A stretch of 64,000 nucleotides of DNA. Origin: Macrostomum lignano. Taxonomy: Eukaryota. The notes below the pieces were generated by a model. That model made no database searches and had not been told where the DNA came from. It worked only from the letters and a program-made list of their open reading frames with translations. Below, one piece after another: positions 28,401 to 34,400 of this stretch (positions are counted from its first letter, which is position 1; the number at the start of each line of letters is the position of its first letter). The stretch covers positions 77,370 through 141,369 of the forward strand of contig NIVC01000837.1 in the NCBI GenBank assembly GCA_002269645.1. The letters are read 5' to 3'. The position numbers and the translations under genes are program-made.

Positions 28401-31400
28401 ATCATCCCCACCCGTGTCCTTATCCAGCATCATCACCACCCGTGTCCTTATCCAGCATCATCCCCACCCGTGTCCTTATCCAGCATCATCACCACCCGTG
28501 TCCTTATCCAGCATCATCCCCACCCGTGTCCTTATCCAGCATCATCACCACCCGTGTCCTTATCCAGCATCATCCCCACCCGTGTCCTTATCCAGCATCA
28601 TCCCCACCCGTGTCCTTATCCAGCATCATCACCACCCGTGTCCTTATCCAGCATCATCCCCACCCGTGTCCTTATCCAGCATCATCACCACCCGTGTCCT
28701 TATCCAGCATCATCCCCACCCGTGTCCTTATCCAGCATCATCACCACCCGTGTCCTTATCCAGCATCATCACCACCCGTGTCCTTATCCAGCATCATCAC
28801 CACCCGTGTCCTTATCCATTTGCACGGAAGAAACTCCATCAAGACGAAAACTGAACCATTTCTCCAACAAAAAATGTCAGACACAAATTTCAATTTCATT
28901 TTCTATTGTTGGCTTATGCATAAAAAAGAGTTAATTGACGGCAGGGTCAATGCCTCAACTTGACATCCGGTACCCAGATGGTCAGCGGGTCGCTATGCCG
29001 CTATTAGGCGGAACCGAATCTTATTAGATGAGGCTGTTGGCTGGGTGGCCGAGGCAATATTTTTCTCTGAATTTTCCTGGGGATCGATTTCCATTTCTTC
29101 TTCCCATTTTCACCTAACCCTCCCGACCAGGAACCCATCCAGTTTTTCATTCATCGAAGCCATCCATTCAAGATATCAGCGGCAGTTTTGGGGGCAGTTC
29201 GAATTCCCTATGGGAGGCTGGGCGCGAAAATAAACAAGTGCCAATTTGGATTTCTTTCGTCATCGAGCGCGCGCGGCGGCGGCGGCAGCGGCGGCGCGGG
29301 GTGTCAAGTGGCGATGCCAGATGTCGCGCTTCAATGTCAGTCACTCCCGCTGGGCGTCACGGGCGGCGGCAGCGGGGGGGGGGCAATGGGGCCGACTGGT
29401 TTCGAATAAGATTTTTTTCCTAATTGGCCGCCTTTTCCGCATCAGCTTGCGTGGCGCGAATGTTCAGGCTCTTCAGAAATCATCAGGGAGGAAGACGGTT
29501 GCGCTTTGTGATCCCGACTTAGTTGCTAAGGCTAGGGCTTTTCTCGGCTTGTCTGTCCTGCTGTCTTTGTTTCTGTCTGGCTGTCTGTCTGTCTGTCTGT
29601 CTGTCTGTCTGTCTGTCTGTCTGTCTGTCTGTCTGTCTGTCTGTCTGTCTGTCTGTCTGTCTGTCTGTCTGTCTGTCTGTCTGTCTGTCTGTCTGTCTGT
29701 CTGTCTGTCTGTCTGTCTGTCTGTCTGTCTGTCTGTCTGTCTGTCTGTCTGTCTGTCTGTCTGTCTGTCTGTCTGTCTGTCTATCTGTCTGTCTGTCTGT
29801 CTGTCTGTCTGTCTTAGTGTCTGTCTGTCTGTCTGTCTTAGTGTCTGTCTGTCTGTCTGTCTGTCTGTCTGTCTGTCTGTCAGTGCATCAGTCATTGCAG
29901 TCTCCCTATTCTAGAAAAGCCAAACAGGCATACAATAAATCTATCTTCCTCCAAATATCGTGTTGCAGCCGTCGGCCTGCGCCCCGCATTCCGGTACAAG
30001 CATGGCCCAGCATCATCAGCATCATCACCAGCTGCAGCAGCAGCAGCAGCAGCAGCAGCAGACTCTGCCGCCAGCCTCGGCTCAGCAGTCGCAGACTCGA
30101 TCCTCCGCTCTGCCAGCCAAGCAGGCCAAGCTGCCCCAGTCGGCCGCCGCGATGTCGCAGGCTTCGCCGTCGGCGGCTGTTGACGAATTCGACGGCGGCG
30201 CCGGTATCGGCAGCGTCACGGCGAAGGGCCTCGCCATGGTGCAGCAGCAGCTCCACGCCCTGTCCGGCATGGCCTCGTCCTCGTCGGAGAAAAGCGTCGG
30301 CCAGGCGGTGAAACGGCGCGGCGGGCCCAGCAGTGCGGCGACGTCGATTAGCGACGACGAGGACGACGACTTCGGGCTGAGCCCGGAGGAGAAGCAGCAG
30401 CGGGAGAAGGCCCGGCGCTATGCCAACAACGCCAGGGAGAGGTGAGCGCGACCTTTTTTTGAGCAGTTTTCGATCTGCTCAAGTTTGAGTGCGTTTTTAT
30501 TTAGGACAGTTCAACGGATTTTGAGTTGATCGAATTCGCACAAGATGATTTTCGGGTAGACTGTGAGTAGGTCTGTGTAGATTGTGGGTATCTGAGTAGA
30601 TCTGAGTAGATTGTGAGTAGATCTTCGGGTAGATTGTGAGTAGATCTTCGGGTAGATTGTGAGTAGATCTTCGGGTAGATTGTGAGTAGATCTTCGGGTA
30701 GATTGTGAGTAGATCTTCGGGTAGATTGTGAGTAGATCTTCGGGTAGATTGTGAGTAGATCTTCGGGTAGATTGTGAGTAGATCTTCGGGTAGATTGTGA
30801 GTAGATCTTCGGGTAGATTGTGAGTAGATCTTCGGGTAGATTGTGAGTAGATCTTCGGGTAGATTGTGAGTAGATCTTCGGGTAGATTGTGAGTAGATCT
30901 TCGGGTAGATTGTGAGTAGATCTTCGGGTAGATTGTGAGTAGATCTTCGGGTAGATTGTGAGTAGATCTTCGGGTAGATTGTGAGTAGATCTTCGGGTAG
31001 ATTGTGAGTAGATCTTCGGGTAGATTGTGAGTAGATGTTCGGGTAGATTGTGAGTAGATCTTCGGGTAGATTGTGAATAAATCTTCGGGCAAATCTTGAC
31101 TAGATTGTTGAGCAGATATTGTATCAGGTGTTCATGTAGTTTGTGGATCTGCCTGTGATTGGGTTTGCTATGAGACTGTTAGGCAGACCTGAATCAGAAC
31201 GCTACAGAACCTCTGCCCGCTATTCCTGCGTCAAGACTCCGCGTCAAAGACATCAATGACGCCTTCAAGGAGCTCGGGCAGATGGTCGATATGCACACGG
31301 GGAACAGCCAGCCCCTGACTAAGCTGATGGTGCTGCAGCAGGCTGTAGGCATCATCACTGCCTTGGAGCAGCAAGTCAGAGGTGACCAAGCACAGCAGTG

Positions 31401-34400
31401 GAATTTGCAGTGTCGCATGGACTGCGTTTGATCCTTTATCCCAGTTGCTAACCTCTGCTAACAGTGTCTAAAGCTAAGCCTGGAAGTTCCGGGTTCCGCA
31501 AAACAGGATACAATACTCGTATTTGAATAGAATTGTCTTTTTAAAGTTGAGACTGGCCTAGTTGTAGCCAAGTTATAGCAGAAGAAAAGAATATTTTACA
31601 ATACAATTGCATGCGCAATAATAGGGGAAATATAAGCATTACAGAATTCGGGATATAATCGGTATATTTCTCAACTCCGTGAACTAATTGCCCGACAACT
31701 TCCTGGCTAGGGGGAGCAGCAGATGTTTTTTGCCCCCACGAGAAGCAAAAGTGAAAGCAGAAATCGTGCTAAAAATTGTATAAAAAATTATCCTCCCCCA
31801 ATCTCCCCAAATATGAAGTCGTTCCCTCAATTTCCCGCCCGCGTCTGTGTTTGGTGCAACTTTTTTCCCTCAAACAATTGGATAAAATTATCCTCAAGAA
31901 CAGGGCTTCGTGAAAATTGGAAAATTATTGGCTGCCAATTTTGTTATAATTGGGCAATTTTTGATAACACCGGCAATTTCCATGCAGGCCCAGTTTTCTT
32001 CTGAAGTAGACTCGAGGCAGCGAGGCGGGCCCAATTATAGGAAATTATCCTTTCAGCCTTTGTTGCCAAGTGCCAAGTTGCGATTGCTGCCTTTGTTAAC
32101 TGCATGCCTAACTGTCTTCTTTATGTCCTCCAATCTCAACATACTCTCTCAATCAGATCTCACTCTTTTCTCCAATCTCAGTCCAATCTCAACCTGTCCT
32201 TGTCTTTAAGTCCAATCTCACCCTTCTCTCCTCTCCCAGTCCAATCTCGCTCTCCTATACCAGTCTAATCTTATTCTCCTATCTCACTCCTCTCAGTCCG
32301 ATCTCACTTTCCCATCTAAGTCTAATCTCACTCCTCTCAGTCCGATCTCACCCTTAAACTTCCATCGAATCCTATGCATGATTTTTTCTGTTAAATTCAA
32401 TTGCTTGCAATCGTTTGCCGTGTCATAAATCATCTGTCAGAGTTCGAGTTCGGGACATCAACGGAGCATTCAAGGAGCTGGGCCGTATGACCATGATGCA
32501 CCTGAAAAACGAGAAGCCCCAGACTAAACTGGGGGTGCTTCAACAAGCTGTCACCGTGATCACCGCTCTGGAGCAGCAAGTTCGAGGTAGACGATTTTGT
32601 TACCAATATCCCCGTGTGTCATTTACGATTTAAGCATGGCTATTCATAGTAGCATCGTGTGCATGCGAAAAATCCAGATCTGCTGGTTTGCTTGCGTGAA
32701 AAATTTCGGACTATGCGTTTTACGAGTAACTACGAGCTACCGGCTACCTTTTCACTCGATCATACAATGCTTTTCTATCTCTAATCTCACCCTCATTACT
32801 TTAATCTTACACTCGCCACTCTAATCTCACCGTCTTCGCTGTAACGTCGCCTTAATCGATCAAATATAGCCCTAGTAGCTATAATCTCACCCTCATTGCT
32901 CTCTAATCTCACTGTCTGCTCTCTAATCTCACTCCCATCACTCTCGAATCTCACACTCTTTGCTCTCTAATCTCACTGTCTGCTCTATAATCTCACCCCA
33001 TCACTCTCGAATCTCACTCTCTTTGCTTTCTAATCTCACCCCATATCTTTCTAATCTCACCCTAATTGCTCTCTAATCTCACCCTAATTGCTCTCTAATC
33101 TCACCCTAATTGCTCTCTAATCTCACATTCAGCACTCTCTAATCTCACCCCCATCTCTCTTATTTCTCTCTAATTGTCTTCGCTGTAATCTCGCCTTTAT
33201 AAATCAAATCTCACCCTCGAAACTCTAATCTCACCCTCTCAATCAACTCTCAATCTTAACAGAGCGCAATTTGAATCCGAAAGCCGCCTGTTTGAAGCGT
33301 CGGGAAGAAGAAAAAACTGACCACATGCCGGACCGGATGTGCGGCAGCGGCGGAGGCGGCAGCCTGCAGCATCCCCATCATCACAGCGGCTCCGATAACA
33401 TGGGGATGGCGACCGCGGCAGCCGCAGCAGCAGCGGCGGCAGCTGCCAGCAGTCAGCTGCAGTCGGCTTCGTCGCCTGGAGTTCCGGTGTCGATGGGCAT
33501 GAGTTTGTCCGGGATGCCGGCCGGGCACCATCATCACATGGCTCATTTTGGCGCGGTCGATTGTAAGGTGAGAAATCTGGATTGGATAAAAAAATAAAGC
33601 TCAGTAGCATGTGATACTGTACACAGTCTGTACACAGTAGCACTGATGCCTGTACACAGTAGCACTGATGCCTGTACACAGTAGCACTGATGTCTGTACA
33701 CAGTAGCACTGATGTCTGTACACAGTAGCACTGATGTCTGTACACAGTAGCACTGATGTCTGTTGTACACAGTAGCACTGATGTCTGTTGTACACAGTAG
33801 CACTGATGTCTGTTGTACACAGTAGCACTGATGCCTGTACACAGTAGCACTGATGCCTGTACACAGTAGCACTGATGCCTGTACACAGTAGCACTGATGC
33901 CTGTACACAGTAGCACTGATGCCTGTACACAGTAGCACTGATGCCTGTACACAGTCTGTACACAGTAGCACTGATGCCTGTACACAGTAGCACTGATGCC
34001 TGTACACAGTAGCACTGATGCCTGTACACAGTAGCACTGATGCCTGTACACAGTAGCACTGATGCCTGTACACAGTAGCACTGATGCCTGTACACAGTAG
34101 CACTGATGCCTGTACACAGTAACACTGATGTCTGTACACAGTAGCACTGATGCCTGTACACAGTAGCACTGATGCCTGTACACAGTAACACTGATGTCTG
34201 TACACAGTAGCACTGATGCCTGTACACAGTAGCACTGATGCCTGTACACAGTAACACTGATGTCTGTACACAGTAGCCCTGATGCCTGTACACAGTAGCA
34301 GTACGTCGAACTAGAACTCTGGCCTTCGGTTGGCAGCTATAAAAATACTTGAACTACTTTGCCTTTGCCTGTGTTGCAGTGGACAATGCGAAATTCTATT

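Follow-up and report, generated by a model that had tools for sequence, protein, structure and literature searches.

Does an invertebrate E-protein gene carry its own version of the switch by which vertebrate TCF3 yields E12 and E47, and if so, do the two share an origin? The question is raised by a stretch of 64,000 nucleotides from the free-living flatworm Macrostomum lignano (GenBank assembly GCA_002269645.1, contig NIVC01000837.1, positions 77,370 to 141,369 of the forward strand; henceforth the window, with positions counted from its first letter), in which two tandem exons for the helix-loop-helix (HLH) domain of an E-protein had been proposed from the bare sequence. We find that an E-protein gene is represented in the window by its 3' half, in four coding segments on the plus strand, two of which, exons A and B, are alternative versions of the same 146-nt HLH exon, and that only one of them can sit in an mRNA coding for a full E-protein. 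The same A-then-B arrangement occurs in annelids and in a tapeworm. We consider it probable that A and B are an ancient pair, that each productive mRNA contains one of them, and that the resulting isoforms differ in activity.

The locus and its two HLH exons

Judging from its sequence, the gene is an E-protein, i.e. a single-copy-type basic helix-loop-helix (bHLH) gene of class I, from the Daughterless/TCF3-4-12 family. The basic-region pattern that marks class I (RRxANNxRER) is present, with an HLH behind it. When proteins were searched with the isoform-A segment, the matches were TCF4, TCF12, E2A and Daughterless E-proteins from across the animals, all with Pfam PF00010, and isoform B matched solved structures in the PDB with E values from 1e-33 to 1e-19 (E2A, E = 1.2e-33; TCF4, E = 3e-24). 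The extension after helix 2, which begins at 33263, is identical to the motif found there in vertebrate, mollusc, annelid and arthropod E-proteins. The N-terminal motifs AD1 (LSDLLDFS) and AD2 (LDDAIHVLRNH) had no match in the 64-kb window when chiton, annelid and cestode N-termini were used in tblastn searches and the motifs themselves as regular expressions; they may lie upstream of the window, have diverged or be absent.

Direct reading and a script agree on the two 146-nt HLH exons, on their identical phases (2 in, 1 out) and on their coordinates (Table 1). The constant exon that precedes them is bounded by a ttgcag^CCG acceptor at 29968/29969 and a GGGAGAG^gtgagc donor at 30441/30442 (here and below, ^ marks an exon boundary). 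Its 3' end reads ...GCCAGGGAGAG^GTGAGC at 30441, with two codon bases left over, and it does contain, as had been stated, most of the basic region (RRYANNARE), which is therefore shared by both isoforms. Exons A and B each end one base into a codon. A transcript with both is shifted in frame and meets its first stop after 47 nt of exon B, which leaves 99 nt to the next junction; one that skips both meets it 55 nt into the last exon (both computed by script). The claim that taking both or neither breaks the frame is thus borne out, and a full E-protein can be coded only by an mRNA with one of the two. The pair shows the features by which tandem duplicated exons are recognized: neighbouring homologous exons of equal length and phase, each with its own AG and GT sites, and a frame-based ban on double inclusion and on double skipping.

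The splice sites themselves are of uneven quality. Exon A has a weak AAG acceptor (A at -3), and exon B and the last exon have CAG; the donors of both alternative exons are sub-consensus (GTGACC for A, GTAGAC for B), and the last coding exon contains a possible alternative donor at 33567/33568. The intron upstream of exon A measures 794 nt and the one between A and B 1059 nt, a length that rules out steric exclusion as the mechanism of mutual exclusivity.

Exons A and B are intact yet diverged, as originally described: both frames are open, and they are identical at 100 of 146 bases (68%) and 36 of 50 residues (72%). By the Nei-Gojobori method, nonsynonymous divergence (dN) is 0.265 and synonymous divergence (dS) 1.42. 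The resulting dN/dS of 0.19, a check that had been suggested for the pair, shows that A and B diverged under purifying selection. Each exon also matches E-protein HLH exons of other phyla far past chance (tblastn E 1e-17 to 1e-23).

The 14 residues by which A and B differ fall at the junction of the basic region and helix 1 (A/B: L/V and K/R, the latter at the position equivalent to R582 of TCF4), at the end of helix 1 (Q/R, V/T, D/M), in the loop (TGNSQ-L in A, LKNEK-Q in B) and in helix 2, towards its start and its middle (M/G, G/T, I/V). In the loop and where helix 1 ends, exon A lacks three positive charges of exon B, and its loop is uncharged; the three extra basic side chains of exon B lie near the DNA backbone. 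The basic region is not entirely common property either. R578, R580 and R582 of TCF4 are essential for E-box-dependent activation, in TCF4 as in Daughterless (PMC4736037). The codons equivalent to all three lie in the alternative exons, which begin at the R578 equivalent, and the third is a lysine in A, so that the isoforms do not share all DNA-contact residues. The expectation that they would do so holds where the basic region is shared, over its N-terminal two thirds, and fails at the third of these arginines.

Table 1. Coordinates of the E-protein exons, of the repeats between them and of other features in the window.
Feature	Position	Strand	Description
Constant exon, E-protein gene	29969..30441	+	Q-rich and acidic region, most of the basic region (RRYANNARE); ends in phase 2
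HLH exon A	31236..31381	+	146 nt, intact frame, lophotrochozoan A type, caag^ACTC...TCAGAG^gtgacc
HLH exon B	32441..32586	+	146 nt, intact frame, canonical B type, gtcag^AGTT...TCGAG^gtagac
Last coding exon, constant	33263..33597	+	aacag^AGCGC acceptor; low-complexity tail; stop TAA at 33595-33597
23-nt satellite	30593..31089	.	21.7 copies, 98% matches (Tandem Repeats Finder); fills most of the intron before exon A
CT-rich degenerate repeats, 20-29 nt	32144..32351	.	TCCAATCTCAC; A-B intron, directly upstream of exon B
CT-rich array, 22-nt period	32779..33154	.	TAATCTCACCCTCATTGCTCTC; intron downstream of exon B
Longest ATG open reading frame near the gene, 438 residues	27647-28963	+	Translated tandem repeat, unit of about 36 residues
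308-residue open reading frame	37099-38025	+	Weak or low-complexity Pfam matches
442-residue open reading frame	40951-42279	-	Weak or low-complexity Pfam matches
Ty3/gypsy-type retrotransposon coding region (long terminal repeat class)	46318-50141	-	928-residue and overlapping 385-residue open reading frames
253-residue open reading frame	53340-54101	+	Weak partial RVT_1 match, E = 1e-4, below the Pfam cut-off

The exon pair in other animals

We fetched the genomic E-protein loci of Lottia, Elysia, Capitella, Helobdella, Schistocephalus and Amphibalanus, together with cobra TCF3, and mapped their exons. In the annelid Capitella teleta (KB294417.1; L004, 10293-11694) three HLH exons follow one another, A (146 nt), C (152 nt, its loop longer by two residues) and B (146 nt), all flanked by AG...GT. 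A second annelid, Helobdella robusta (KB096742.1; L003, 12065-14949), has A and B of 146 nt each with AG...GT, and after B a third, degenerate HLH copy that is without AG or GT at the homologous positions. The tapeworm Schistocephalus solidus likewise has A and B of 146 nt each with AG...GT, separated by an intron of 152 nt (the very short spacing in its protein model is an artefact of that model). In the gastropods Lottia and Elysia there is a single 146-nt HLH exon with AG...GT, and it is of the A type. The flanking introns are conserved as well: the one that interrupts the basic region (..NNxRE^R) is common to the window, Lottia, Elysia, Capitella, Helobdella, Schistocephalus and the barnacle Amphibalanus, and the phase 1 intron after EQQVR to the window, the molluscs, the annelids, the barnacle and cobra TCF3.

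What distinguishes the A type is a signature in which the loop ends in Q-P-[LM] and is followed by T-[KR]-[LV]-M, with Q or H, not R, before the M at the end of helix 1. Exon A of the window carries this signature and sits 5' of a B-type exon, as in Capitella, Helobdella and Schistocephalus, and in each of the multi-exon loci one later exon is of the canonical B type (D/E-K/R-P-Q-T-K-L). In protein sequence, exon A of the window shares 73-75% identity with its A-type counterparts in Capitella, Elysia and Schistocephalus, and exon B reaches 81% against those of the B type in Helobdella and Schistocephalus. The original prediction had read the pair as an independent duplication. Independent of vertebrates it does appear to be (see below); restricted to Macrostomum it is not, given the same A-then-B order in two annelids and a tapeworm.

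The class was surveyed by an exhaustive HMMER search with exon A alone against 1.84 billion representative proteins. The 176 different HLH segments of 48 residues that were gathered comprise 51 of the A type and 125 others. The named members among the 51 are flatworms, annelids and molluscs only: cestodes and a monogenean (Hydatigera, Schistocephalus, Cichlidogyrus), annelids (Ridgeia, Dimorphilus, Capitella and Helobdella-like) and molluscs of four classes (Nucella, Haliotis, Littorina, Mytilus, Solemya, Mizuhopecten, Saccostrea, Liolophura). Q25, P26 and M31 are invariant in 51/51 A-type segments, these positions being the ones by which the class was selected. Outside that criterion, R or K at position 15 is present in 0/51 A-type segments and in 99/125 of the others, and the mean number of charged residues at the seven loop positions is 0.02 in the A type against 2.43 in the rest. 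The A type is spliced to both constant exons in 43 proteins, one of them from a Logan transcript contig of 985 nt.

In a neighbour-joining tree of 45 HLH segments (48-55 alignment columns) the A types form one clade. The tree includes a second, diverged E-protein locus of M. lignano (UniProt A0A1I8FSE8, P0124), which keeps both an A-type exon, with a five-residue insertion in the loop, and a B-type exon that matches exon B of the window at 46 of 48 residues. The two M. lignano A exons are joined with 49% bootstrap and the two B exons with 92%. The case for a single origin of the pair is made by three things taken together, namely the invariant signature, the 5'-to-3' order and an exon structure that agrees in size, phases and flanking introns; they place the duplication, in all appearance, before the split of flatworms from annelids and molluscs, i.e. 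at the base of Lophotrochozoa. In molluscs B seems to have been lost: Lottia and Elysia have none of the B type within 10 kb, and 10/10 RefSeq isoforms of the chiton Liolophura sinensis carry A.

Other variants of the same region were seen in passing. Two clitellate-like metagenome contigs (P0123, P0126) contain two well-conserved B-like exons in tandem. Some isoforms of the chiton (P0380-P0388) and of Mizuhopecten yessoensis (P0390) have an insert of 21 residues that repeats the basic region, in the forms RRQANNARE-SDEPEDPEQAALRRQANNARE-RVRVRD or -RPEKDEVSAAMRRQANNNRE-, which looks like duplicated mini-exons swapping the basic region beside helix 1; no such chiton- or scallop-like insert was found in the window.

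For alternative use of tandem HLH exons in a lophotrochozoan E-protein, oysters supply direct evidence at the transcript level. Logan transcripts P0272 on the one hand and P0279 and P0282 on the other have identical flanks and two different A-type HLH exons between them. The second of these exons (..ALQSGSTQPLTKVMILQHAVHVISSLEQQVR) is carried by Saccostrea RefSeq isoforms, which RefSeq lists without comment, and further oyster proteins are P0228 and P0391. The oyster arrangement differs from that of the window in that both exons are of the A type, i.e. A has been re-duplicated, and do not form a pair of A and B.

Crustaceans have a pair of their own. In the barnacle Amphibalanus amphitrite (VIIS01001332.1; L005, 14011-14370) two 146-nt HLH exons are separated by an intron of 68 nt, and exon length, phases and the RE^R intron are as in the window; models from the ostracods Darwinula and Cyprideis and the amphipod Hyalella (P0140, P0153 and P0136) read through two HLH segments. 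The 5' crustacean exon, however, differs from exon A of the window in its ancestral-looking K-A/G-Q-T-K-L and is without the A-type signature. The 3' exon is of the insect 'da type' (IRIRDINEAL...LNMAVEVIM), which forms a clade of its own with 95% bootstrap. The crustacean pair, of which the barnacle alone was read at the DNA level, is probably a separate duplication, and its da-type 3' exon suggests that the HLH of insects descends from one member of this pancrustacean pair. Models of Popillia japonica and Scophthalmus in which the bHLH occurs in two identical copies were disregarded, since the doubling probably stems from the assembly or from haplotypes. In the butterfly Bicyclus anynana, daughterless shows mutually exclusive splicing of two previously unannotated exons that differs between the seasonal forms (PMC9218548), although that paper does not say that these exons encode the HLH.

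Exon use and origin of the pair

How, then, might the Macrostomum gene employ its two exons? In the scheme that we favour the spliceosome would pick A or B for each transcript. Transcripts with both would be removed by nonsense-mediated decay, by analogy with other animals, and double skipping would give a truncated product without an HLH. The A and B isoforms would have in common their activation regions and, of the basic region, the N-terminal two thirds; they would differ at the junction of the basic region and helix 1, in the charge of the helix-1 end and loop, and at the first interface positions of helix 2. The predicted result is a different preference for, or stability with, dimer partners and different DNA affinity or backbone contacts, and one gene would provide two E-protein activities, much as TCF3 provides E12 and E47, through different residues. 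That exon A is used in Macrostomum we infer from its conservation, and the choice of exon is presumably regulated.

The public gene models for M. lignano are of limited help here. The exons flanking the pair are identical to those of four UniProt models, A0A1I8JSA8 (P0121), A0A1I8IPN2 (P0067), A0A1I8FLQ4 (P0266) and A0A1I8JQI8 (P0223), and the constant exon is 100% identical to the first three. All four, which represent the locus or near-identical copies of it, are wrong at the HLH exons or at the preceding exon. P0121 fuses A and B through trimmed junctions (EQQVR^VRVRD, EQQ^RRNLNPK) and is then out of frame in the last exon; P0067 and P0266 use exon B and have a frame error in the constant exon. 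Similar fusions of the two alternative exons are found in snake, gecko and bird TCF3 models that hold both E12 and E47. An exact look-up of P0121 found no matching contig on record.

Several observations weigh against the scheme set out above. The M. lignano models with correct downstream splicing (P0067, P0266) use B, and P0223, from another copy, carries exon A with a frame change, which may be a PacBio assembly error or a genuine defect of that copy. Exon A has the weak AAG acceptor, and in the alignment of the two M. lignano loci A diverges much faster than B. Protein searches with 105-residue and 308-residue isoform-A queries returned only genome-derived UniProt models from Macrostomum, and no transcripts. 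The rules of nonsense-mediated decay applied to flatworms are taken over from other animals. The bootstrap of the A-type clade is only 51%, the segment being short. Finally, a search for competing RNA structure in 30442-33262 yielded inverted repeats of 11-21 nt with 76-92% complementarity, which is the level expected by chance.

The use of B in P0067 and P0266, the frame change in P0223, the AAG acceptor and the larger difference of A between the loci are also what would be seen if exon A were a silent relic in Macrostomum and B alone were spliced. Such a relic would nevertheless have had to keep an intact 146-nt frame with an AG acceptor and a GT donor, and a dN/dS of 0.19. It would also have had to retain, over a span of more than 500 million years, 73-75% identity to the A exons of other phyla, something that unused sequence could not do. 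A is moreover kept in the second, diverged M. lignano locus, and it is the exon used in models and transcripts from cestodes, from annelids and, throughout, from molluscs. We therefore regard a silent exon A as unlikely, if the most serious of the alternatives.

A second alternative concerns origin: A and B might be orthologous to the E12 and E47 exons, through one duplication in the bilaterian ancestor that was followed by loss or gain of an intron. The resemblance is real. TCF3, like the gene in the window, is a class I bHLH gene with two tandem homologous exons for the dimerization domain, with entry in phase 2 and the same 3' junction (EQQVR^E) in phase 1. In cobra TCF3 the E12-type exon has 239 nt and the E47-type exon 227 nt, again phase 2 in and phase 1 out; these lengths and the 146 nt of the window are all 2 mod 3, so that exclusivity enforced by the frame is common to both pairs. 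It does not set the window apart from vertebrates, the TCF3 exons not being multiples of three either. A and E12 also both begin with L (LRVRD in E12), and B and E47 with V (VRVRD in E47). This contrast, emphasized in the original prediction, exists and is not diagnostic, since L, V and I all occur at position 1 within both classes.

Against common descent, the tree puts E12, E47 and lamprey TCF into one group, apart from A and B. Pairing of A and B with E12 and E47, respectively, would have contradicted an independent origin and was not what the tree returned. The A-type signature is found in neither vertebrate exon, and exon A differs from both in its uncharged loop and in having no arginine at the end of helix 1. 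The extent of the exons differs too. The statement that the E12/E47 exons include the basic region proved accurate for cobra, whose 239- and 227-nt exons hold the whole of it plus about 25-30 upstream codons, with the acidic segment, and are not interrupted by an intron at RE^R. The isoforms of the window, by contrast, share two thirds of the basic region and everything upstream of it. E12 reportedly contains an inhibitory segment, described by Sun and Baltimore in 1991 and said to lie upstream of the basic region; it has no alternative counterpart in the window, since the upstream sequence is shared there. E12 binds DNA weakly and E47 strongly (PMC6317319). An independent origin of A/B and of the vertebrate pair is the better-supported reading of these comparisons, and we judge orthology of the two pairs very unlikely.

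Two further possibilities can be treated briefly. A recent tandem duplication peculiar to Macrostomum might be suspected from two adjacent exons of identical length in a repeat-rich species with a history of genome duplication, but it is hardly credible given an A-B dS of 1.4, near saturation, the grouping of A with A types of other phyla and of B with B of the second locus, and the A-B order shared with annelids and the tapeworm. Just as improbable is a protein with two HLH domains through inclusion of both exons, as modelled in A0A1I8JSA8 (P0121), which does hold A and B: canonical joining of the two leads to a stop 47 nt into B, and the model stays in frame solely by dropping junction residues before it runs out of frame in the last exon, an artefact shared with the snake and gecko TCF3 models. 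The ancient, mutually exclusive pair thus remains the reading that we prefer.

Candidate splicing control, neighbouring features and wider meaning

Under that reading something should steer the choice between A and B, and the introns around exon B offer candidates. The repeats directly upstream of it (32144..32351) are 74-75% pyrimidine on the sense strand, and both arrays that flank it, taken together, 71-75%. Of the 20 copies of AATCTCAC in the 64-kb window, 19 lie in these two arrays. Motifs of the UCUU/CUCUCU type reach 48.8 per kb in the downstream array (32779-33154) against 12.5 per kb in the whole window, an enrichment of about 4x. The arrays may be a platform for splicing regulation or a mere minisatellite. 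In human TCF3 the choice of exon is under the control of hnRNP H1/F and PTBP1, acting through exonic and intronic silencers, and PTBP1 on intronic silencers between the exons helps to enforce exclusivity (PMC6795145); by analogy, we put forward as a hypothesis that the arrays could be binding sites for a PTB-like repressor.

The 23-nt satellite in the intron before exon A, of which 19 exact copies were counted, was considered as a pairing partner of the CT-rich arrays. The duplex energies were better than those of mononucleotide shuffles by 2 to 3.8 standard deviations, a margin too small, and too much a matter of base composition, to be relied on. Two more simple repeats border the gene segment: (TGTC)83 at 29550-29881, just upstream of the constant exon, and a 22-nt satellite of about 30 copies at 33628-34300, which begins 31 nt past the stop codon.

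In the Ty3/gypsy-type element (Table 1) the 928-residue frame encodes a zinc knuckle, an aspartyl protease, a reverse transcriptase and RNase H, and the 385-residue frame, separated from it by one frame change, the zinc-binding and core domains of an integrase. The 253-residue frame is probably a fragment of another retroelement. The matches of the 442- and 308-residue frames are to a NUMOD-like endonuclease motif and to an alanine-zipper or MCP-like coiled coil. The longest frame near the gene (27647-28963) was examined as a possible E-protein exon and rejected, being a translated tandem repeat with no Pfam match.

We found no description of alternative HLH exons in an invertebrate E-protein in the literature. 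A census of lophotrochozoan bHLH genes (Bao et al. 2017, PMC5381572) counts one E12/E47 gene in Capitella and in five molluscs and two in Helobdella and Lingula; it explains the additional copies of the leech by gene duplication and is silent on splicing and isoforms. Some of these counts may represent the exons described here, counted as genes. Two catalogues of tandem duplicated exons trace 21 human events to Bilateria, and TCF3 is absent from their main text. The A/B pair is apparently an undescribed counterpart of E12/E47, one that is confined to the HLH, is older and independent, and includes a distinct A-type class. Parts of it are already in databases, in the form of the RefSeq oyster isoforms with alternative A-type exons.

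Taking these cases together, we lean slightly towards seeing the HLH exon as a recurrent hotspot of duplication, which would have produced the lophotrochozoan A/B pair more than 500 million years ago, the additional exons of annelids and oysters, the pancrustacean pair and vertebrate E12/E47. If so, the solution represented by E12/E47 evolved repeatedly at a single exon, and the different pairs would amount to a natural experiment on which HLH positions tune the choice of partner. In practical terms, A and B are fused or mis-spliced in the public Macrostomum gene models.

Almost every tissue-specific bHLH factor, whether proneural, myogenic or of another kind, has an E-protein as its obligate partner. 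If the reading proposed here is true, invertebrates credited with a single E-protein would draw two or three such activities from the one gene, and the A isoform, with its uncharged loop and no arginine in helix 1, would constitute a distinct functional class. A hidden regulatory layer would then operate in the neurogenesis, myogenesis and stem-cell differentiation of flatworms and annelids, groups that include models of regeneration as well as parasitic tapeworms.

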